DNA of 64,000 nt, taken from contig NC_134031.1 of assembly GCF_964204645.1 (NCBI RefSeq), forward strand, positions 3,844,001-3,908,000, read 5' to 3'. A program made the translations under genes and the position numbers. The notes below the pieces were generated by a model. The model searched no databases. It saw only the letters and a program-made list of their open reading frames with translations, and was not told where the DNA came from. The DNA comes from Tubulanus polymorphus. Taxonomy: Eukaryota; Animalia; Nemertea. Shown here one piece after another: positions 47,048 through 62,444 of the stretch (its first letter is position 1; every line of letters begins with the position of its first letter).

Positions 47048-50000
47048 TCACTTCTTATCGATGAAAGCTCTGACCAGGTCAATCGGCAGCGGGAATACGA
47101 TCGTAGAATTCTTCTCAGCGGAGATAGTGTTGAGGGTTTGCAGGTAACGCAGTTGTAAGGCGGCCGGCGATTCGGCGATGACGTCGGCGGCTTCTTTCAG
47201 CGCGCGCGATGCTTTCTGTTCACCTTCGGCAGCGATAACCTACAAATTAATCGTCGACGATATACTAGAAAGAACCTCAGGGCACTTTCTTAATGAGGTG
47301 AGGGTTCACTCCTCGTAAAAAATATTTCTTTTTTATGACCGGTAAACTGAATCTCGGCATTCAGAGTTGAAACCCACAGTCCATGATTAAAACATTTTTT
47401 GGCTGTTAGTTTCGGAGTTAACACTACACTCCACCATCAGAGAAACCGAGTAACATGATTAATTATGAAACCGTCAGAAAATAAATGGTTTAACCATGGA
47501 CTGCGGGTTTTTCTTTTTTTTTTTAATGCAAGATATACTGACCTTAGCGCGAGCTTCTCTGGCAGCTTCAGCTTCTGCAGCCATAGCTCTCTGTAACTGT
47601 ACCGGCAAGCGGACATCTTTACTATAAAATAGAATTCAGCCGTTAATATACAAAGAATGTCATCATAATATCTTCGATCAAATAAGGCAGACAACACAAT
47701 TTCTGTTTCAAGTTTCTATTGGTATTGACATGTTTTCGAGATGGAAAATTCCAGAAGCTTTACAACAGCTCTGGGCTACACCTACCCAAGTTTGAAAAAA
47801 AAAAATCTTGCACATTTTCGTTTTGTCATGCGATGATATATATTGATTTGGAAGCCTTAAGTTGATCAAAAATGAATGAATGACTGAGCGCTCATCATGC
47901 CTGCACTATGGCTCGCGATTGAAAAAATGTTCCCGCAGAAAATACCTATTGTCTCTCTATTTTAGAACATGACGGTATATTTTCGACAGAATTTCATAAC
48001 AACTGCTCACGCTCAGCTTGGCAAAATGACAAACTGGATAAACAAACGACATTCCGAGCTTGTAAAAGAATACAAACATCAATACTAATCAATACAGATG
48101 AATGTGCGTCAACTGCGATGTTGATCTCTCGCCACATTGATGTGATGTGCTCTTCTGCTCGAGGGCTGAAAATATTGAGCTTTGAAGTGTCGGAAACACA
48201 TAGACAAAATAAAGGGTTAGTGGCGCCTATACGCTATATTTGATCTAACCCTGAAGTAAAACTCCTCACTTCAGCTGTGGTTATTAATGATTTGGTAACT
48301 ATTTATTACTCCACAGAGTTAATCTGTGTCTTGTTTCCAGATTTTTTAAGGTGGCCATTTTTATTTTACTATTCCTTGACGTGCATGTTGTTTTCTTTGA
48401 CTTGAGTTGCTAAGAATCCGATCAATTTACACAGTCAAATACGTAAGACATAGGTGGTAACTATTTTTGGGCGGTACCAATGTCAACAGATTTCCCTGAT
48501 TTTAGCTTTTTTACAAAATTCCCTGATTTAAAAAAAAAAGAAGAAAATTTCCTGACATTCCCTGATTTCCAAGTAAGTCGCCCCCCCCGTTTTTCTAGCT
48601 GTGTACACTAAAAGCTTAAAGCATGATGCCAATACGTATGTGTAATGGTTAACGCCAGGGATCTCAAGTTTATTATTGCCTAAGAATGTCAACGTAAAGA
48701 TTTTGTCATAATTTCACTTACATTTCGACACGTTCAACCTTCACTCCCCAGTTATCCGTAGCTTCATCAAGATTCGACTGTGGAATAAATATTAAAAAAT
48801 CAAATGAATATTGGTTACACTTTATATTCAATCCTGAAGGCTAGATTAGATTCCGAAAACAAACATTGATGATAGGAAAAAGAAGCCTATAACTTTGTGG
48901 ATGTGGGAAAGACTGTTATAACGCCATCTCTTGAATGCTTAAATCATCTCTTCGTCTCTTTATTACCTTAATATAGTCAACCACCGATATACCGCCCTCC
49001 CATATACCACCACCCCACCTACCGCACCCCACCTACTGCCAGGTGGTATATCAGGGGTTGACTGTACATGTATATACATGTGTGATGCCAAAATTTCTTG
49101 AATAAGCCAAATCTCATTCATATTCAATGAAAATAGCATTTTTCATCTATAAAGCCATGTATTGCTGCTTGGTCCCGGTGCTTGAACAGACTTTTGGCCA
49201 TAACATGTCATTTTCAGGTGATCACACTGACCTGCATCTGGTGGCTGATGTTTTCACGGTCGGACAACAGTTCACTGAGGTTCTTCATACCGAGCACGTT
49301 ACGTAATGTAGTCGCCGATAATAATCGCGTCGATCGACTCGCGTCTTCCACATTCGTTACGGACATAGTTGCGTTATAAATACGATAATAAACAACAGCA
49401 TCGACGGCGACTGTCACAGAATCTTTAGACAGAATCTGAATTTCGAATGGAATATTCGTTAACATCTCATTACTGAGGCCCAACGCGGGCAACGAAACAG
49501 GAGACGGAAACATGTTTCGGAGTGTTTCCCTGCGTTGTCTGTATTTACGACAAGAAACCTGGTTTTGGGAAACAATGTTTCTAACATCAACCATATCTGA
49601 TTCAGTGTTTCTGTTTTCATAGTGCTAACAGGGGTGGATCAAGTTTTTGGAAAGAGGGGTGAACATGAAATATTGGGACACTATTTACATAAGTTTTTGG
49701 CCCATAAAGGGTCCTCCACCAGACTAATTAGAAAAATTTGATGCATTAAGGTGGATTCTGAGCACTTTCCTGGTTGAAATTAGGAATGAAATATGGGCAC
49801 AATTTTACCAGTTTCTAAATAACTTGGGGAGGAAATTCCAAGGTCACTCCGCCGAAAAAAGGGGTGCACCCGTAGATCTGCCACTGTTTTGATACAACTT
49901 ACTTGCCTCCCAGATGCTCTAGAAGTCTTTTACTAATTTCTTCAGTATTCGTAGATTAGATAGAATTGGAAGGCAACAGAGGTAAAGGTTTCTGACCGAA

Positions 50001-50837
50001 TGAAAAGAGCATCCGTGCTACAACCTGGCACAATTTGCTTTTTATAGATTTCTCAAAAAACCATTGGTAATTCCCATAATCTTCAAATCAGACTTACCTC
50101 TTGTGGAGGTACGTCGAATGAAACGGTCCTGAGGTCGATCTTAAAGTATTGATCGGTACACGGTATGATGAAAAAGAGACCGGGTCCTTTAGCGCCTCCC
50201 GACAGCAAACGACCGAGACGGAATATGACAGCTCTTTCGTATTCTTGTACAACCTAAAAACGACATATGTAGGCGATTGCTTGGGCAGTCGGAAGTATAG
50301 TCCGGAAATAGTTCGGAAATTAAGCGCATTCGGTTATTAGTTCCGACCAGTCGACTAGATAAGAAAACCGAATTCGGCACTGGCTGCGATCAGGGGTGAG
50401 TCCAGGGGCAGACTTTGACAAGAGCACTCAGAAATTATTAAAAGGGTATATATACTGAAAAAGGGAAGTTAAGTATCCAAGCAGCCAAAACAAGGGTCTG
50501 AAAAATTTTAAAATTTCAGTGCATTTTCATACAATTTCTAGGCACTCAAGGGATATTCAAGAGAGAATATAGGCTATATCTTGCGCTGCAGACTGCTGTC
50601 TTATTAGTTGTCGATGGAAAAAGTGCACTGAAAAATATTGCATCTTCAAAATGAGCTCGGAAAATTGCGACGGGAGCACTATGCTCCTTGTGCTCCTGTC
50701 CGGATCTGACCCTGAGGCTGGAATACATATACATACCTTCAAACAGAAGGCTAAAGAGAATGGTATAGTACACAGGATGAGCAACCACGACAACGCTGTC
50801 AGGAAGTAACTACAGCATCCCATCTTTTCGTCCGTGG
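47048..50837 (-). CDS. Stomatin / band-7 (SPFH) protein, constant region, 6 exons
   Basis: Exons 50737-50837, 50098-50253, 49232-49435, 48722-48777, 47543-47621, 47048-47239. Hairpin hydrophobic segment with Pro, [69 protein letters not shown]. Confidence 0.95.
48973..49065. mobile_element. Short Tc1/mariner-type MITE, same family as 56569-56766
   Basis: AGTCAACCACCGATATACC / GGTATATCAGGGGTTGACTG. Confidence 0.7.
49629..49886. mobile_element. CAGGGG(C/T)GGATC-type MITE, dispersed family
   Basis: CAGGGGTGGATC ... GATCTGCCACTG. Relatives at about 45380-45556, 50391-50714, 29750-29911 and 5561-5800. Confidence 0.55.
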
Positions 50838-51025
50838 CTGAAATGAAAACATCGAAACATTTAGAATAACATCGTCAGGACAGCGATGATTCCGGTATAG
50901 TACACAGGATGAGCAACCACGACAACGCTGTCAGGAAGTAACTACAGCATCCCATCTTTTCGTCCGTGGCTGAAATGAAAACATCGAAACATTTAGAATA
51001 ACATCGTCAGGACAGCGATGATTCC
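50762..51025. repeat. Perfect 132-bp tandem duplication overlapping stomatin exon 2 and its acceptor
   Basis: 50762-50893 is identical to 50894-51025. Confidence 0.95.
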
Positions 51026-52262
51026 AGCGCTCTTAACTTCCGCGCGGCCGTGAGTGGAGAGTGAAGCTATAAATAGCACATTGTAATAGCATGCTAATCA
51101 ATAGATTCACACAGCGAAGCGCTAATACTGGAAGGATTGGGTGACATTACACATTGCCAACTGCTTTTCCATTTGATGCGATAATCAAAACTACTAAACA
51201 GTAGTTTAACAAAATCAGATTAAGTTTAACGCAGCTGTAAGCCGCGATCACACGAGCATTTTTGTCCCGTGCCGAATTAAGCCAGGAACAACCATTCACA
51301 CAGGTGTCAAATAGGCGTACATTGCCAATTAGGCTGATAAAAAATATAGGACCAGGCCCGAGCCAAACTTATTGAATTGCAACTGGTTCCACAAGTGATT
51401 CACTTCGCTATGTCGTGGCCGTTTAGTATATGGTTTACATGTGAACTCGCTCCCAAGTAAGCCATGGGCCAAATTTGACTTGAGCCTGATCTGGGTTAAA
51501 TTGTCCTGCGTGATCAAAGGCTCGATGTAATTTTTTCATTTTCTATGTTGTATTATTACCCGCTAGCTGAATTTAGTTTTATATCCATATCCTCATGTGC
51601 ATGATACGCAGGCAGCGCTGGTCGCGGATTTGAAAACAAAATGTTATAAGCAAATTTTCATTGTAAGCTGAATTACGTTAATCCCATCAAACTTCGATTC
51701 AGAGATACCTACATCATCTGATAGAATCTGCCGGACAAAAAGCGGACCGGCATAGCACTAGCTTACCTTTGAGAAATATTTCAAGTCAAATAAAAAAAAA
51801 ACTGTTTTACATTCCTACGGACTGAAAAGCATTCCTTTTACAAATCGATGTGATCATTTTTTTCGAACTCAGTATAGATAGATAATGAAACAGTTCTAAC
51901 AATAAACCCAATTTACCGGAACTCCCGTATGTCGCCTCAGAGCTGGAATGTCAAATCCCGGATGTCAACTCTATACCGTGTAACTAATATTGGTCGCGTT
52001 ACAGAGCAGGCGTAAATTTACCTACAAAACATTGACTACCTCCATCTAAACACCATCGTCACTTTGTTTGAGAAAAATTTCAACTGTCATCAAGCAAAAT
52101 TAGTGAAATGATCTTTTCTATCTTAACCCATAAACATTGATCTCTAATGTAATGATTGATCTCAGTGCATCACCCCTGCCATCAGTATCCACCATACTAT
52201 GCATTATTGACCGGCTACGATGATATCTACTCGTCCTTCTCATTCACTTTCACAATTCATAC

Positions 52263-52389
52263 CTTCTATCGACAAACTGTTACTCGGACGATCGGCGATT
52301 TTTGAATGCGAACTTTCATCATCATCGCGCTGCTGCTGCTGTGTATATATCATATTCCTGCTACCGTTTTCGATCACAGACGCTTGCAT
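52263..52389 (-). CDS. Stomatin alternative first exon V1 (MQASVIENGS...NSLSIE)
   Basis: ATG to G|GTATGA, 127 nt, phase 1. Confidence 0.7.
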
Positions 52390-53830
52390 GATTACAAATC
52401 GGCGCACACACTGCCGAGCAGTGACAGTGTATCGGTTACGCCGATGCTATACATACCCATACGACGATGACGGAGAGGCAGAGAGAGTGTGAGGAGAGAG
52501 AGGCAGAGCAGAAAGAGACGTTAAGAGACCTGCCACCATCCACTCTACATGCATATTCCCGATAATGAGAGTGGATGGCGTTAACCAACGCTATTCGGAA
52601 TAACAGATTTGGAATAACGGATAGCTGGGGATGCTGCAGAAATCGATGCTAAATTTCTAGATACTGTCCATAGTTATCAGGTTTACTTTTGACTAGGAAT
52701 TAGGAATTATGAATTCACTTACGCTCCAACCCTTTCCATGGTATATAGAGCGAGACTATATACAATATTTACAAAACAACAGAAAATATAAACTCTTAAC
52801 AAAATATAACAAAGTTATTAACAATACATAGATACACTATCTAAAATATAATAATTCAATGATCTATACAAATCTAAGCCTATTTTGATGAATTTAGCTA
52901 ACCGGGTTGTTAGAGTTCAAGACTATCAAGGTTTCCAAAAGTAAAGTACAAGCTAATAAAACTAATTCATCACCTAAAATATTACAAAATGATTCTATCT
53001 AACTGAAGGTTTGATAATCTATTCGCAGGTAAAAGATAAGACTCAATCCAAAAATTTGAATTAACTGATTACTTAATCATCTGATTGTGTCATGCAACGC
53101 CCCCTGATGAACATACTCAGAAACAGATGACATTGAAACGCGGCACGAGTTACACGTCAACGTGTAACAGCTGAGCAATTTTTAGCTGAAAAGCGAAGTG
53201 AAAATACGCTTTTGCCACTCAACTATTCAATATGAAAATTCTAAAAAATAACCATATGAAATGAGATGGGAAACAGTCAGATATTTCAATACGTACGAAA
53301 ATTGCGTAAGGTTCTACCATACATGTACTTCAAACGTTGGCACTTTTACAAATTTGATCTCGTGGGCGGACTATTGTATTCGCTATGGGCTCGAATTCTA
53401 CTGTCTCAAGATGAATTAGTAGATCGCAATATGCATGACGAAATGACAAATGTAAATTCCAACAATTGTTGCCGGGCTTTTTTAGACTGAAGAAAGGTAG
53501 TTCCCCGAAATAATTCTAGTATTTTCAGATAAACTTATTAAACTCAACAGTTGTGGGATTTGACATTTCTTTTCCAAGTCTAAAATTGACGCCTAGATTT
53601 TGTTGATTTGGATGTTTTGACTACCGTATGATACAACAGTTATCAAAAGCAAACAGTTAGGATAATAAAACAGCCCGTAAACTACATAAAAATCCGATAA
53701 AATGTAAAAATTGTATCTATCCAGAACGAACTTCCTACAAAGTATTTTTTATCACGATTCAGTCGTTCTCGTGAAAAAAAGACAATCAAAACACTTCAAA
53801 AATTTAAAAAAAAAATACCAACAAACCTAC

Positions 53831-53942
53831 CATCTTCTAAATCATCTTTATTTTTTGACTTGAACGTCGTTGATGGGCCCGGATCGGCGTAGCCACCATC
53901 ATCTCGATTATTATGATAAGCGGGACCGACTTTTGATTCCAT
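53831..53942 (-). CDS. Stomatin alternative first exon V2 (MESKVGPAY...NKDDLED)
   Basis: ATG to G|GTAGGT, 112 nt, phase 1. Confidence 0.75.
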
Positions 53943-56568
53943 GTCGATGAATTCGCGATCACGACAACGATATCCTCAAAAATACGACGCGGTTTTTTAA
54001 ATATTCTATCGCTCTTTCCGAACGCCAATGCTCGTCCCCGAGACCGACCGACGAGGAGCTCCGTCGTTACACTAACTATATAAAACAACAGGGAACTCCA
54101 TATATGTATAATTCTAATTATCCAATGAGGCTTTAATCCACGTAGGTACAAATGATACACAACCTGTTGTGGTCATTATTACCTCTACATCATCAATTAT
54201 CATACACAACAATAGCGCACTGTATCATCAACTGCTGGTTACCAGCAATCAATGGAATAGTTTGTGCATAGCTTAACAGTGGTGTCGCAATAATGCGCAG
54301 ACCGTATCCGTTGTGGTGCTGTAACCAGTATGGACATCTATATACTCGCGTGCCATATTTTCTAAAAGATGGATTCATCAAGCGGAATGAGCTCGATGAG
54401 AGAAAAGATAAATTAGGGGCCATCCGATGAAGTTTGTGCCTAAGAAGATTTGTACGGAAGTCTATGAAAAAGCTTGGGAAGGAGGAGAGGTCGATGGACC
54501 TAGAGACTTAGTCGAACTGGACCAAGACCCACCCCCCACCCCCCCCACCGGGGCTGGCTGAGGGACAGTGTGTACTAATAATGATAATATATAAGTGTAG
54601 TTTAAGTATATTACGAAAAAGTTTATGTTTGCTTATGGAGAAAGGTGAGGTTGATGGACATTGAGACTACATTGAGAAAATCACAGAAATTACAAACAGT
54701 TTGGGGAATGAACATGAGCCCCCTCCCTAGACCAGGCTGGGGACAGCGTACTAATTTATCAAGTAGGATTGTCTTTATTTTTATGAACTCTAAATAAACA
54801 CATCACACATTTGTGCTTGAATATAATCTAAAATTCAGAATTACGCCACAGGATTTTTCGAAAGTTGAAATGAGATCATATTCAAAAAATAAAACGTTCG
54901 TTTGATGAAGGCATCATTTGAAGGTTTGTATCGGAAAGTCTAAATCGCGAACGGAACATACAGCAGTATGAAAAATGTCTAATGAAAACATACTGAACTT
55001 TTAAAACATTTATTACTACCGGTACGCAACTGGAATGTCTTACGGAAATTGCATCTAAACATTTCATGTTAGATCGGTCGAGTTTTAAATGTCCCTAATC
55101 CCCACAAGGAAAAATAAATATGCGCCATTTTGTTAGCAAGTTATCTGCAGATTTCAGATATAAGATTTTTCTGAACGTTGAATGCAATAAATAACCATAT
55201 TGTTGTTCTCATAATCTATAATGAATGACTCAATGGAATACCAGGGATGCCCATACATCTACATACTTGCGTGCCATATTTTCTAAAAGATTGATTCATC
55301 AAGCGGAATGAGCTTGATGAGAGATGAAGAGAAATTAGGGGCAATTCGATGAAGTTTGATACTTAATAAATGCAACATCAGATGAGAATACAGAACTAAT
55401 AGTGACCACACCCGATTAAACATCAGTACTTGACACAAGACTTACGTTTCTACTAATCAAACTCCAGACACCCATCAAGATCTGCATGGGTGAGTTGGGT
55501 GTAACTATGATAGGTTATGAAATTTATAATACGCGCTCGAGAAAGCAGCTTCTTAAACCTAGTTCTGTGAAATATTCATATTCAGTGCACATAATTTAGC
55601 AAACAATTCCAGACAATTTTAAATAAACCTTTTTCAAATTTTTGATAACAAAAACTGCGCAAAGAAATTCAGAAACGCGAGAAAACAAACACTACCACCA
55701 TAAAATGAAAATTTTGCTAAATACTTTTATTCGCACCGGCACCAAAACAAAAACAAAAACGTTCCTTCTAATTTCCCCACCAAAACATATATCAACGCAA
55801 CGAAACAAATATTGAGGGTGAGAAAACAAAAATTTGTTTTCTCAAAATAAAATTTTTTTTTGCGGTCAAAAAAATCCGGCATGGCCCGAATGAGCCACCA
55901 TAAATAATCAATTGTCTATGGAAATATTTGGCTTTGCAGGTTTAACCAAGCATTGACAATGGGAATGTCCTTAACATAAATGAATTGACATACTTTATAG
56001 GATCATAAACTTAACTAAGCTTCCTTTATTTTCAATGACTAGGTTCGTACATCAATATAATTTAGGTTCCTGCTTATAATAATGAAAGCAAATTTTTCTC
56101 TTTCAAAACTTAACGATTCCACATGGAAGTAATCTATTTTCTCCCTCCCCTGAGCATAAAAGGACAGTTCTGCCGAGACTATATAACATATAAATAATTT
56201 ACTGATTTTATGTAACGAGCTATGAATGAATAAACTAGGTTTAGCCGAATGAATGCCTCTTGAATATAGGACAAACTGTATCAGTTTGCTTTAGTTGTTC
56301 TTAGTTCCGATAGCTGAACGAGAAATCGATAACGACAGAACTGTTTATTCATTTGTCCGCGAGATAACATATGATTCGATTGATCGACCGACCGATCGTA
56401 ACAATGATCATCGTCGCCGTATCAACATCCATTTATTATTCGCGCGACGACGAATAAAATACGTACGTAAGGAAAGTAAGGAAAATCGATTTCGTTTCGG
56501 ATAACGATTAGATCAGGTCACGAAAATAGTTCACAGACGCGAAACCAATAGATATCCAAATGACAATA

Positions 56569-56766
56569 CAGTCAACCCCCGATATACCACTTACATCGGT
56601 GCAGAACGATTTTGGCGGTATACAAAGTGTGGCTGTATATCGGGGGTATTTTTGCTACGTATTTGTATAGATTTGCTACGTATTTGTATAGAGATGTATG
56701 TTGAGAAAACCTGGCGGTAGGCGGCAGTGGCGGTATATGGAAGGGCGGTATATCGGGGGTTGACTG
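56569..56766. mobile_element. Tc1/mariner-type MITE
   Basis: Perfect TIR CAGTCAACCCCCGATATACC, flanked by TA on both sides. Confidence 0.85.
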
Positions 56767-57628
56767 TATATAGGCATATAGGCTCTACTACTTGAGGCAG
56801 ATCCATTTGAATTGGATATCTATTAAACAACAACATTTTCAATGCCATATTTGAAGTCATCAGTGGAGATATTCATATCTTTAATCTCTTATTTATTTGA
56901 CTGGTAATTATCAAAACTGTTGCGATTAGATTTCGTTTCGATTCGTTTTGATTACGAACCCACCACACCTGCCGGGTACGAAACGGAGCGCTAGATTTGG
57001 AAATCGGAAACCGAAGTACAAAATCTATATTCTTGACCCAAAAAAAGGATCAGACACCTTGCACTGAATTTCATGATTCCCTTTTAGGAACATGCCACCC
57101 CCTCCACCCAACAAGTGATGAATTCTGGTAACGCCAACAAATTACTAGTACTGAATAGATATTACACTGATAATTATAAGGATTTGTAGGAGCTTACATA
57201 CTGCATGTATGGCGTATACAACAATGATCCCGATAAAGAATTGGCAAAATATTTGTCGTTATTATTGATTTTCCGTTTATGCAATAACACGAACAGGATA
57301 TTTCTATTTGAGTTCGGAGCGTATCAATACACCACCCGTGTGGAGGCATCGGTACTACCACTCCGCCTACCTGTACCAAAACTAAACCCACTTCTTGCCC
57401 TAACAAAGGAACATAATTTCTGAACGCTCCCCTACAATTCCTATATACTACAAAGAGAAAGCCTTACTTCGAGATGCATCGTCGATGTGATCTCCCGTAT
57501 AATGAGAAGTCGAAGTGGAAGTCTTCACTGGTTACTCCTGTACCAAAATCTAAACCCAACTCCCTCCCCTAACAGTTCCGAACGCCCTCTAACATGAATT
57601 CAAATATACTACGAATAGAAAGCCTTAC

Positions 57629-57740
57629 TTCGAGTTGCATCGTCGATGTGATCTCCCGTATAATGAGAAGTTGAAGTAGAAGGCTTCACTGGGTTCCCTT
57701 GCTTATCCATCGGGTAAATACGTTCTCTACTGTCTGACAT
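57629..57740 (-). CDS. Stomatin alternative first exon V3 (MSDSRERIYP...HIDDATR)
   Basis: ATG to A|GTAAGG, 112 nt, phase 1. Confidence 0.75.
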
Positions 57741-58124
57741 GACGCACTAAAATTGCCGGTGCTCGAATATCACACTCTATTCGTACGCTATTTACGACCT
57801 GTTTACCGGCAGCCCTTAGCGCGTTATCTGTCATATGACTTTTAATCATATGCAAATGCGTCGTTATGCTGCATATTTCAATCGAACACACGTAAAATCA
57901 TTTAGCATGAAGGCAAACTAATACCATGAATAACGGTCGGTTTATTTTTGTTTCTGCGTGTGATCAACACGACTGAACACTCTGATTGGCTACGCGTCTG
58001 TCACTACATATCCTGTTTTAGTCCTGTATAGAATAGCAATAGGCCGTTGATATATACCGGTTATGCAATTTGTCAGAAAACCGAAAAAATATATGGAGGC
58101 AAATAACAATTGTCGTTCACTTAC

Positions 58125-58224
58125 ATTTCAATAGGTCATCGTCCTTATTATCATCGAGCATTAATACATCGTCACGGCCAGAATTGACCGCCGTTAAGCC
58201 GAAATCTGCATCCGTATTTTCCAT
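58125..58224 (-). CDS. Stomatin alternative first exon V4 (MENTDADFG...KDDDLLK)
   Basis: ATG to T|GTAAGT, 100 nt, phase 1. Confidence 0.75.
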
Positions 58225-58576
58225 AGTCTCCTTAAAATTCTGGAGTTTACTTCCTTTACTCTTTAAGACTTTACGTCGCGTTTTTAAACTTATCTTACAT
58301 ATCACATGACTAGGGTAGCATATTTCGATTGAAGTCGATGACTTATCTACAGTTTGATTTCGCTTTTTTTTAACCTGACACTACAGTGCTTGCAACACAA
58401 TCTAAGTGTGGACCAGCTCACAAAGCTGAGTTTTCAGGTTAGTTTTCGCGTGGTTACCCCCTTATCCCGGAAAGGTAGATCCGATTTTTTCGGGACGCTA
58501 TAGGCGTATAGGCGGGTGCACCGGCAACTAGTGAAGCCCCTCGATCTGACCCTGCCGCATACTTTACAGCATCTAA

Positions 58577-59041
58577 AGCCTAGCGCACATCGACACTGCG
58601 ATTGGAGACAACTAGTTGCCAGGTAGTTTTCGGCGCATGAGAGCAACTGGCTGGATACAATCAGTTGCTCGAATTTGTCGATGTGAGCGAGCTTACGACT
58701 GGTTAGCGTCCATCTATCTCCAGTTCCACCCAGTTGCTCATGTTCTACTTTTGAGCAACTAGTTGTACTCAGTTGCTCTCATATCCGTCGATGTGAGCGC
58801 TCCATATTCAAAAACACATGGTTGTAACTGACTAAAACAAAGCGATTTGTCACGTGACTTGTGATACCCTCAAGAATATTTGCTAAACCACATCTCAGTT
58901 GCTGTCGATGTGTGCGCTATGGACCTAGCGACTGGCATGAGCCACGCAGTTGCTGGTTTTTACTAAATTTTCGATGTGCGCGGGGTACTCGCTCACTAAC
59001 AACTAGTTGTCTCCAGTCGCTTTGTCGATGTGCGCTAGGCT
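58577..59041. mobile_element. PIF/Harbinger-type MITE
   Basis: About 42-bp TIR AGCCTAGCGCACATCGACA..., TAA target duplication (58574-58576, 59042-59044), repeated internal TCGATGTGNGCG motif. Confidence 0.85.
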
Positions 59042-59356
59042 TAACTCATCAGTTGTCTCTCCAGAATACCGATGATACTTGTTAGAGGATTGCCATCGAT
59101 TCGATCAATAACACCAAGCACGGATCTATAGGCATGGACATATTTCTATTCCACGCTGTATATTTCATCTGTGCGCGTGCTAGAACAAAAACCCCTCCAG
59201 ATTAAGAAGCAATGAACGAGTCCCAGAGTCAATCTCAAGAGGTAAAGAAATACCAAAGAACAGTCAGTCGAAGATCAAAGATTTGAACCGATGAACCCAT
59301 AATCGATGGCCGACGAGTGACCGCTTGACTACTGGTTAAAAAACGTTTTTACTCAC

Positions 59357-59414
59357 ATTTCTGCAGATCGTCATAATTGCTTTTTGAGTTCGACACAATA
59401 TTTGACATTTCCAT
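59357..59414 (-). CDS. Stomatin alternative first exon V5 (MEMSNIVSNSKSNYDDLQK)
   Basis: ATG to T|GTGAGT, 58 nt, phase 1. Confidence 0.7.
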
Positions 59415-60313
59415 GATGATTTGATTCGATGTATCGAGAACATAGATCTACGTTATATTCAACATTTGCCGAACAGAACTTCCTGTTCATTTTTTATCGT
59501 TATATGATTTCATTCCTTTAATCTTCAATTCAGTTTTAGGACATGAATTAATACATGTCAACAAATAAATCAATATCAATGGGCACAATTTAATTCATTT
59601 AATCTCCATATCAGTCCTATGATACATTTAATGAGTCGTTAAATGTCTGAAATAAATCAATATCAATGGGCATTGAAATGGGTTTTTCTGTGGCATCTGG
59701 GATTCCTCCCGGAGAAGACAGGTTCCCTTTTGTAGTTAACGCTTCAAATTCGCTTACGAGAAATCAAAATTTATCCCCACGCATATTTGATAAGTGTAAG
59801 AGACGATTTAGGCAATAATAAATATATTTCGTCATGATTTACCGGTATTTAGAAATGCTTGTAAAACTTTAACGCATAAGCATCTGCCAACATACGCATG
59901 ATCAGCCATGAATCCTGGTTATCGAATTCAAATTCTAAAGCAATCAAATCAGAATTTAGCTAAACAGATTTTGTCGAATTCAAATATGCGATCAGAAGAT
60001 TTTGCAAGATCAAAACTCAACATTTCGATTCCGTTTTCCATTTAAGCCGCTTTAGGGCTCCTAATGAAGGGTCCAGATGTCTCATGCGTGGAACTACCTT
60101 TCGAAAGGAGACAATCATACATTTCTACTCATTCAGACTATCAAAATATTACGACTTAGGTGATTTTCCTAATTGAGAAAATCTTTTCTCTGAACATTTC
60201 CTTTAAATTAAGCATCTATCCAACTTATGGATACTGACTGAGAAATCGGCGACTGGTTGCCGACTCCTTACGACGCTCGGTTGGACCTTACGCGACCCGA
60301 ATCAGGCTTTAAC

Positions 60314-60592
60314 CCTTTCAGTGCTGACTAATTAATACCCTATAGTGCTGGAGATAATTTGAAAATTTTTAAAAATTCCACTCTAGTGTGTTGAATAACG
60401 GGAATACCACTATAATGGATCTACACCACGGCGCGGTGTATCATTAGTTACTAGTATTTCACTATGTCTGACAAGTGCTGCCATCTTTCAAGGGAGATAA
60501 TTACTAATTACATTAATACACATAGTGCGGTGTACTAGCAAAATCTATCACTGATTTATACACCGCACTGCGGTGTAGATGCACTGAAAGGG
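60314..60592. mobile_element. piggyBac-type MITE
   Basis: TTAA-CCCTTTCAGTGC ... GCACTGAAAGGG-ATAA. Confidence 0.75.
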
Positions 60593-60718
60593 ATAAGCCG
60601 ATAGCCAAACACAGCAAGAAACAACAACGAAACGCGAAAAACATTAGTGTTTCAACGATTCATTCGGCCGCCAAATTTTACAAAATGAGAGGACAACGTT
60701 ATACACATTATAGCCTAC

Positions 60719-60842
60719 CATCGTGAGCGTCGTCTACGGCTCGTTTGCCGTCGGCGGACGCGCGTTGGCGCGATAAATCAGCCGTCGGAGCGCCTCCGTT
60801 CACCGCGCTCGCGTCCGGAACGTTCGAATCGGTTTCGCTCAT
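60719..60842 (-). CDS. Stomatin alternative first exon V6 (MSETDSNVP...AVDDAHD)
   Basis: ATG to G|GTAGGC, 124 nt, phase 1. TATA-like TTATATAA at about 60907-60914. Confidence 0.75.
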
Positions 60843-62095
60843 CTTTAATCTAAGGTGTTTTACTCGCCGGAATAACGAACGACGATCTCGTCTCACGTAC
60901 AACGCGTTATATAATGGTGTCTAGCGAGAGCGCGTGCGATGTGAACTCAAGGATGTTCGGTACCAGAGGCAGCTGCGACTGATTCTACGGTGATCTGGGT
61001 GTGGTGTCGTATATACGCGCCCCACCCCTTTTCAATTACGCCCGCCGGCAATTAAAGCGAGCAGAAACACGAACGATCAATCGCTCGAGTCTCGAAATCG
61101 ACAATTCATCTATTATGACGGTTTTCCATTTAAATTTTAAATATTAATTGCAAAATTATTATTATTACCATTTTTACGTTCTCTGTCTCCCACGAGAGAG
61201 AGTTGTCTAATCATGTACGAGGCCAGTTAGCAGCAGTAGCAGCGACGGCGGTGACGTGCCTCGTTTGAAATTTTCAACTGCCACGCCCGGTTAAAATTAG
61301 AAAATTACCTCATTTCATAAATTTCGTCTCAGCCTACTGAATATGCAACAAAAATATTTACTTATCGGCTTATTTCTTTTAAAGAACGCATACGCCCTCC
61401 AGTTACAGCTCTGAGGGCCCAGAGAAAGGGGGGCGGGGGTTTGTCTTCCTCAAATATGTGAATTTTCAATTAACATGTAATTGATCATTATTATTTTTTT
61501 GACGCTGTATAAACTGTTATAATAATCTTCATATACATTTATTACTACGTGTTATTTAAGGGAGTTTGGTGTGAGGCGATGTGCACTTCATCAAGATTGG
61601 CTAACATAACTTTAATGATCCTTCATATCATATAATTTATATCATAATAATTATCGTCAACAATATTAAGCAATATATGTATTATTTTTGAGGCGTCAAC
61701 AAACTTTCAAGTTAGTTTTTTTGTTTATATATATTTATATATATAGTTATGTTTATATATTTGAGAAATAAATAAATCAATCGATCAATCAATTCATTGA
61801 TTCATTCATTGTTGTTATAACTAGTTGTTATAACCGAAGTGTTTTTAACGAATGAAGTTCAACTGTATCATCAGGGAGAGAGGTATCCTCCCCATCATCT
61901 AAATAAAAGTGAAATAGCCCTGGCAATAATGGCCCACGTAACTTTCGAGCCCACCACTACCAATTTTCTAACATGAAAAAACCCTAAAATAAACTGTACT
62001 TCTTATTTCGATCAAAATCAGGCCATTCAGACTATTAAATATTTTTCTGTCGATTAAGCGCTTGGTTAAAAAAACCTAAAACAGTTAAGACGTAC

Positions 62096-62318
62096 TATCA
62101 GCCGCGTCGTCTTTATGGCGTGGTCTTTCGTTGGTTGACTCGTATTCCGGAGGAGGCTGTTGCGGGGGAGGCCGCTTCGGAGGATCCGCGTCCGAATTCG
62201 CTGATGTTTCGGGTCGACCCGACGAATTCGTATTCAAATCGGTACGCTGTCTCCATTGACCCGGCGTCTCGTAATGGGCGGGATTACCCGCCGTCCCGTC
62301 TGGTTGAAACTGTTCCAT
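62096..62318 (-). CDS. Stomatin alternative first coding exon V7 (MEQFQPDG...PPPEY...HKDDAAD)
   Basis: ATG to A|GTACGT, 223 nt, phase 1. Strong acceptor at 62379-62380 and a candidate upstream non-coding exon donor at 63325-63329. Confidence 0.75.
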
Positions 62319-62444
62319 GTCTTCGTGTCCGATCTTATGTCCGTACATTTAACGCGATGACGATAACTAGTCCCAGATCTACGGTGGAAAATGAAAAAAA
62401 AGAAAGAAATAGACATTCGTTACCCGTCTGACGCGCGAATCAAT

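Follow-up and report, generated by a model that had tools for sequence, protein, structure and literature searches.

A stomatin gene of the nemertean Tubulanus polymorphus with a predicted array of alternative first coding exons

The stomatin gene and its constant exons

The window analyzed here is a stretch of 64,000 nucleotides (nt) from the nemertean Tubulanus polymorphus, corresponding to positions 3844001-3908000 of contig 7 in an assembly of 268 megabases and 77 contigs. On its minus strand lies a stomatin gene with six constant exons (C1–C6, 47048-50837), preceded by a series of seven short, ATG-started open segments (E1–E7) that may serve as alternative first coding exons of the gene. 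The constant exons are listed below in the order of transcription.

50737-50837, minus strand: C1, preceded by a phase-1 acceptor and encoding the Cys-Cys pair and membrane hairpin, with an ATG in frame
50098-50253, minus strand: C2, start of the Band 7 domain
49232-49435, minus strand: C3, Band 7 domain
48722-48777, minus strand: C4, constant exon
47543-47621, minus strand: C5, constant exon
47048-47239, minus strand: C6, constant exon including the stop codon

All six exons have AG/GT borders, and their phases are consistent. C1 opens with two bases that complete a codon, followed by Thr-Asp-Glu-Lys-Met-Gly-Cys-Cys and the hydrophobic hairpin, and thus accepts an upstream exon ending in phase 1; the initial annotation had placed C1 at the same coordinates and in the same phase, and both of its edges are confirmed by the spliced RNA contig described below. 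The Cys-Cys pair is followed by a hydrophobic stretch of ~25 residues with Pro-Phe-Ser, and C1 aligns at 67% identity with the hairpin of Elysia stomatin. The Pfam family PF01145 (Band_7) matches C2 and C3, and C3 matches solved stomatin chains with an E-value of 1e-24, several of them from 16-chain entries. Mollusc stomatin/MEC-2 proteins align exon by exon with 67–92% identity (72–92% for C2, C3, C4, and C6), and a word-index protein search with C3 gave a best match of 89%, the named matches being from molluscs, one flatworm, and one nematode. For C1 (33 residues), a search of representative proteins returned only 16 weak fragments from other animals, and the word-index search with its open frame gave no candidates, a blank that is uninformative given the length filter. 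Judged from the agreement among the Pfam domain, the solved structures, and the exon-by-exon homologs, the gene is a genuine stomatin (SPFH/Band 7 family), as had been annotated initially.

A perfect tandem duplication of 132 nt is found at 50762-51025, whose copy (50894-51025, minus strand) takes in the acceptor of C1 and 76 nt from the start of this exon. Use of the duplicated acceptor (50969) would lead to a stop within a few codons. In two samples, the DNA contigs end on both sides at a point 30 nt into this repeat, indicating that the duplication is present in the reads and not in the assembly alone.

An upstream array of short coding exons

The seven segments upstream of C1, all on the same strand as the gene, are as follows.

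52263-52389, minus strand: E1, 127 nt, 42 residues, polar, ending in SLSIE and without the DDxxx motif
53831-53942, minus strand: E2, 112 nt, 37 residues, ending in DDLED
57629-57740, minus strand: E3, 112 nt, 37 residues, ending in DDATR
58125-58224, minus strand: E4, 100 nt, 33 residues, ending in DDLLK
59357-59414, minus strand: E5, 58 nt, 19 residues, ending in DDLQK
60719-60842, minus strand: E6, 124 nt, 41 residues, ending in DDAHD
62096-62318, minus strand: E7, 223 nt, 74 residues, ending in DDAAD

All seven start with ATG, contain no stop codon, are 1 modulo 3 in length, and run directly into GT, so that the initial description of seven open segments with phase-1 donors holds throughout; only the limits given for E7 need an amendment, since its open frame, although real, reaches an earlier ATG at 62348, which would extend the peptide to 84 residues. 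The ends of E2–E7 share the arrangement Asp-Asp-x-x-x, one base, GTR, with Ala or Leu as the third motif residue in all six, and the six endings read previously at an equal distance from the junction were all recovered. Upon joining to C1, the junction codon is predicted to encode Ala, Thr, or Ser, and the DDxxx motif comes to lie at a fixed distance, 11–12 residues before the Cys-Cys pair and hairpin of C1. E1, which ends differently, is the weakest member of the array. If three or more 5′ exons in tandem that have an ATG and a donor of their own, but no good acceptor, are taken to make such an array, the locus appears to contain seven, together with one candidate outside the window.

The pattern GAYGAY-N10-GTR occurs 11 times in the two strands of the window, as compared with 3.29 ± 1.71 times in 100 shuffled sequences, none of which reached 11. 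Seven of the 11 matches are on the minus strand between 53.8 and 62.1 kilobases (kb), where ~0.3 would be expected in ~13 kb of one strand. The composition of the encoded peptides is also unusual. Pooled peptides of E1–E7 contain 15% hydrophobic residues, no Cys, and 14.5% Asp, versus 41%, 3.6%, and 3.7%, respectively, in 112 background ATG-started open reading frames of the same region, and the hydrophobic content is below the background mean in every one of the seven peptides, including that of the motif-less E1. Furthermore, polar ATG-started segments ending at a donor on this strand number 19 in phase 1 (many of which overlap and represent other starts or donors of the exons already listed), six in phase 2, and one in phase 0. 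Control stretches contain 0–4 such segments, the enrichment being confined to this strand and to phase 1.

With regard to the origin of the DDxxx motif, the variable exons and their flanks have no common DNA similarity beyond GAYGAY and GT, apart from a duplicate of E3 described below, which bears out the earlier remark that the segments are otherwise dissimilar. Moreover, both Asp codons occur in the DD motifs. The lack of other DNA similarity and the use of both codons suggest that the motif reflects a constraint at the protein level, kept separately in each exon. The initial annotation had left the choice between exon duplication and a shared constraint; the latter appears to explain the motif better than recent duplication does. 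In the stomatin fragments of other animals retrieved with C1, an acidic stretch is located right before the pre-hairpin Cys within the same exon, which fits a requirement for acidic residues proximal to the membrane, here probably supplied by each variable exon.

Two additional features on the same strand bear on the extent and growth of the array.

57436-57540, minus strand: partial tandem duplicate of E3, 89% identical, downstream of E3 with a spacing of 161 nt
3911529-3911616 of contig 7 (L003:3529-3616), minus strand: candidate eighth exon beyond the window, located 5.2 kb upstream of E7

The E3 duplicate has kept the donor and a DDASR ending (motif copy at 57468-57483) and has an upstream stop and no ATG; by these features it is a pseudo-exon, and its presence shows that the array grows by local duplication. 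The candidate eighth exon was the one further good candidate in a relaxed scan of the next 30 kb past the window, and comprises an ATG, 29 polar residues that contain DDAAP and end in DESGA, and a good phase-1 GTAAAA donor. It likely belongs to the array. About 1.6 kb upstream of this candidate, a neighboring gene on the same strand, with DUF4456 exons from L003:5218, bounds the array. Within the 3.7-kb gap between E2 and E3, direct repeats at 54334-54436 and 55255-55358 (91–94% identical, ~921 nt apart) are probably an inserted repeat element. E7 contains a proline-rich stretch at 62120-62170 with PPPEY, a PPxY-type motif. Motifs of this type are bound by the WW domains of Nedd4-family ubiquitin ligases, and the PPPEY of E7 may be bound by such WW-domain ligases.

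RNA evidence and choice of the first exon

Reads from four runs of one 2024 study were placed on the region 48700-54699, which covers C4–C1, E1, and E2; from a 2015 run presumed to be RNA, nothing aligned to this region, a blank that does not speak for silence of the gene. In one of these runs, X2, whose kind is listed as unknown and which is in contig form, spliced mRNA is present at ~834-fold over a genomic-like background of ~24-fold, and this contrast in depth marks X2 as an RNA run or a mixed run. A contig of 517 nt at a depth of ~834 joins 48722-48777, 49232-49435, 50098-50251, and 50735-50837 through GT-AG introns on the minus strand, thus corresponding to C4-C3-C2-C1. The contig stops exactly at 50837, where a collinear contig carrying the intron into C1 has a depth of only ~35. 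Both the position of this end and the ratio of the depths establish 50837 as a used acceptor, and indicate that nearly all transcripts continue into something upstream. The RNA data therefore confirm the acceptor hub at 50837, while lowering the confidence in E1 and E2 for the reasons given below.

Two side observations were made in the same run. At its other end, the spliced contig breaks off precisely at the donor edge of C4 (48722), which may mean that splicing from C4 to C5 is alternative; the C4–C5 intron contains no further copy of C5. In addition, the depth at 51700-51899 is ~137 in X2 versus ~24–35 nearby, with almost no excess in the DNA run, and a strong donor (AAG|GTAAGC) without an open frame before it is located near 51766. 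This segment may represent a non-coding leader exon, and translation would then begin at the in-frame ATG of C1 and give a Met-Gly-Cys-Cys N-terminus; the signal could equally be an artefact, with the T-run at ~51790-51800 attracting poly(A) contigs.

Serial joining would require that each variable exon have, between the in-frame stop upstream of it and its ATG, an acceptor at an offset compatible with the frame coming from an upstream phase-1 donor. In this interval, no in-frame, phase-compatible AG is present for E1, E3, and E5, and the in-frame AGs of the remaining variable exons all lack a pyrimidine tract. Serial splicing into one long N-terminus, which had been named initially as a case that would overturn the proposal, is thus ruled out by phase and by the missing usable in-frame acceptors. 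Irrespective of the frame, seven of the eight exons have no acceptor in the 200 nt before them that scores above the background median, and nothing within that distance of E5 scores better than −4.9, although the test itself is weak, because the real acceptors of the stomatin gene score only −0.1 to 3.2 on the generic matrix. The absent or poor acceptors favor true first exons over cassette exons. Taking these results together with the common phase, we consider it reasonably probable, with moderate confidence, that E1–E7 are alternative first exons with separate promoters that feed C1.

Several results weigh against this reading. In X2, the coverage of E1 and E2 comes from collinear contigs only and does not exceed that of the intron (~24 and ~13–35, respectively), and no joint from E1 or E2 to 50837 is present among the 15 best-supported of the 36 joints in the region 48700-54699. 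E1 and E2 are therefore at most minor in the X2 sample, and the main 5′ exon either lies upstream of 54699 or was missed. No 9-mer or 10-mer is common to the 500-nt stretches upstream of the eight exons, as might be expected of a shared promoter element; one 8-mer occurs in four of the eight, which is within random expectation. The sole close stomatin paralog in the genome (contig 7, 8662498-8678904, minus strand), whose hairpin exon has the same phase-1 acceptor, whose C2 is split in two, and whose introns exceed 10 kb, has no DD-type array of first exons in the 21 kb upstream. No homologs of the variable exons were found in a word-index search with the open frame of E7, a result that is uninformative because of the length filter and the absence of close relatives. 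Likewise, among five loci of relatives collected by protein match, a distant compact genome has no comparable array, and the others are cut just upstream of the gene or are 1-kb metagenome pieces. The initial proposal of variable first exons feeding one constant region agrees with the sequence in its common phase and poor acceptors. As regards the junctions predicted from each donor to 50837, this acceptor is in use, and no joint from E1 or E2 is seen among the best-supported ones.

The RNA data are compatible with another explanation, namely that only one or two upstream exons are used and that the rest are unused or decaying relics of duplication. E1 and E2 do not rise above the intron background while the constant exons stand at ~834, a decayed duplicate of E3 exists, and the motif-less E1 could be counted among such relics. 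However, six exons have diverged beyond DNA similarity, yet all retain the ATG, the open frame, the polar composition, the DD motif, and the phase-1 GT donor, whereas relics would have shed the ATG and the open frame, as the E3 duplicate already did. In addition, two haplotypes of E2 differ by two synonymous changes and one conservative Gly-to-Ala replacement, and the frame is kept in both. We thus regard this explanation as unlikely.

It is about equally doubtful that the variable exons are mutually exclusive internal exons, transcribed from one promoter with a shared non-coding leader and selected by splicing. AG dinucleotides do occur a few bases upstream of the ATG in E3, E4, and E6, and the low matrix scores of the real acceptors of this gene leave room for weak acceptors at the variable exons as well. 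Nevertheless, the upstream acceptor scores described above, in particular those around E5, argue against internal exons, and so does the lack of a docking/selector system: comparison of the final 760 nt of the intron preceding C1 with the 500 nt after each donor revealed no common site with complementarity of at least 9 nt. Finally, it is very improbable that the segments are open frames without function that arose by chance in intronic or intergenic sequence, since, although short ATG-to-GT segments are common and one of the chance type (hydrophobic and without the DD motif) is found at 59843-59909, the motif count, the compositional bias, and the specificity for strand and phase all indicate that the array has not arisen by chance.

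Predicted products and comparison with known systems

In the model that we propose, based on alternative first exons, one minus-strand stomatin gene has its six constant exons preceded by a 10–15-kb array of mutually exclusive 5′ coding exons, each of which would provide a start codon of its own and encode a short cytoplasmic tail (19–74 residues) that is polar and probably disordered. The phase-1 donor of each variable exon would pair only with the acceptor at 50837. Since the exons lack usable acceptors, the transcription start is the most likely selector; each exon would have its own promoter, and its donor would be the only one available to C1. The products would then differ in the disordered tail and share the acidic DD(A/L)xx motif 11–12 residues before Cys-Cys, as well as an identical hairpin and Band 7 core; the fixed distance of the motif in six tails suggests that the tails vary while the membrane-proximal acidic motif is kept. 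Stomatins form large homo-oligomers. We infer that each exon is transcribed from its own promoter and spliced to C1, and that the tails would alter how the stomatin oligomer is sorted or which partners it has. Co-expressed isoforms could be mixed in such an oligomer.

A further extension of this model is speculative, and we consider it improbable as a whole. Eight promoter-selected tails, specific to neurons or other cell types, might be mixed in the oligomer, with DD(A/L)xx serving for acylation or channel docking and each tail recruiting its own partners (that of E7, for instance, a Nedd4-type ligase by way of its PPxY motif), so that a combinatorial tail code provided by a single gene would tune mechanosensory or acid-sensing channels.

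Little is understood, to our knowledge, about the N-terminal tails in the stomatin family. Those of vertebrates differ between paralogs, and in C. elegans variable ends decide which neurons use the protein. If the present prediction is true, the gene would offer seven or eight tails that keep one acidic motif beside putatively acylated cysteines. This would suggest two separable functions, one of a constant motif near the membrane and one of a tail that recruits partners and can be exchanged, and would provide a natural set of variants for testing both. The array would also make a small, non-adhesion addition to the few known arrays of variable first exons. Altogether, the locus is probably a real case of a gene layout that is already familiar from other families; we regard it as a well-founded prediction of gene structure in a non-model animal rather than a demonstrated mechanism. 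Our literature search yielded no publication on alternative first exons in stomatin genes.

The predicted layout resembles that of the vertebrate clustered protocadherin (Pcdh) α and γ loci, in which tandem alternative 5′ coding exons that have a start codon and a donor and lack an acceptor are joined to one set of constant exons; in the stomatin gene, an array of 5′ coding exons with ATG and donor would likewise feed one constant region. The Pcdh variable exons, however, are ~2.4 kb long and clearly paralogous, encode the whole extracellular and transmembrane part, and have promoters with a conserved element, whereas those of the stomatin gene are 58–223 nt long, encode only a probably disordered tail, and have in common a five-residue motif and no shared upstream element. 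A similar relation is seen with UGT1A, where variable first exons, each thought to have its own promoter, are joined to common downstream exons, as is predicted here. The first exons of UGT1A encode a folded substrate-binding domain and are clear paralogs, in contrast to the short and probably unstructured variable part of the stomatin gene. Unlike genes with Dscam-type mutually exclusive splicing, the stomatin array has no common docking/selector complementarity of at least 9 nt in the intron stretches compared.

Within the stomatin family, vertebrate STOM, STOML3, and podocin have a common hairpin and Band 7 core and differ in their N-terminal cytoplasmic tails, and human stomatin is palmitoylated mainly at the Cys immediately preceding the hairpin. 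This diversity of tails is provided by separate genes in vertebrates and would be provided by one gene in T. polymorphus. The closest described case in the family is C. elegans mec-2, a stomatin gene producing several isoforms with disordered variable ends that are used in different neurons, two of which are needed together, probably as heteromers (PMC8934639). The variation described for mec-2 is C-terminal and arises from the use of an alternative 3′ splice site and a cassette exon under MEC-8 (PMC8934639). One stomatin gene with disordered variable ends is thus known from C. elegans and predicted here, where the array would vary the N-terminus through alternative 5′ exons.

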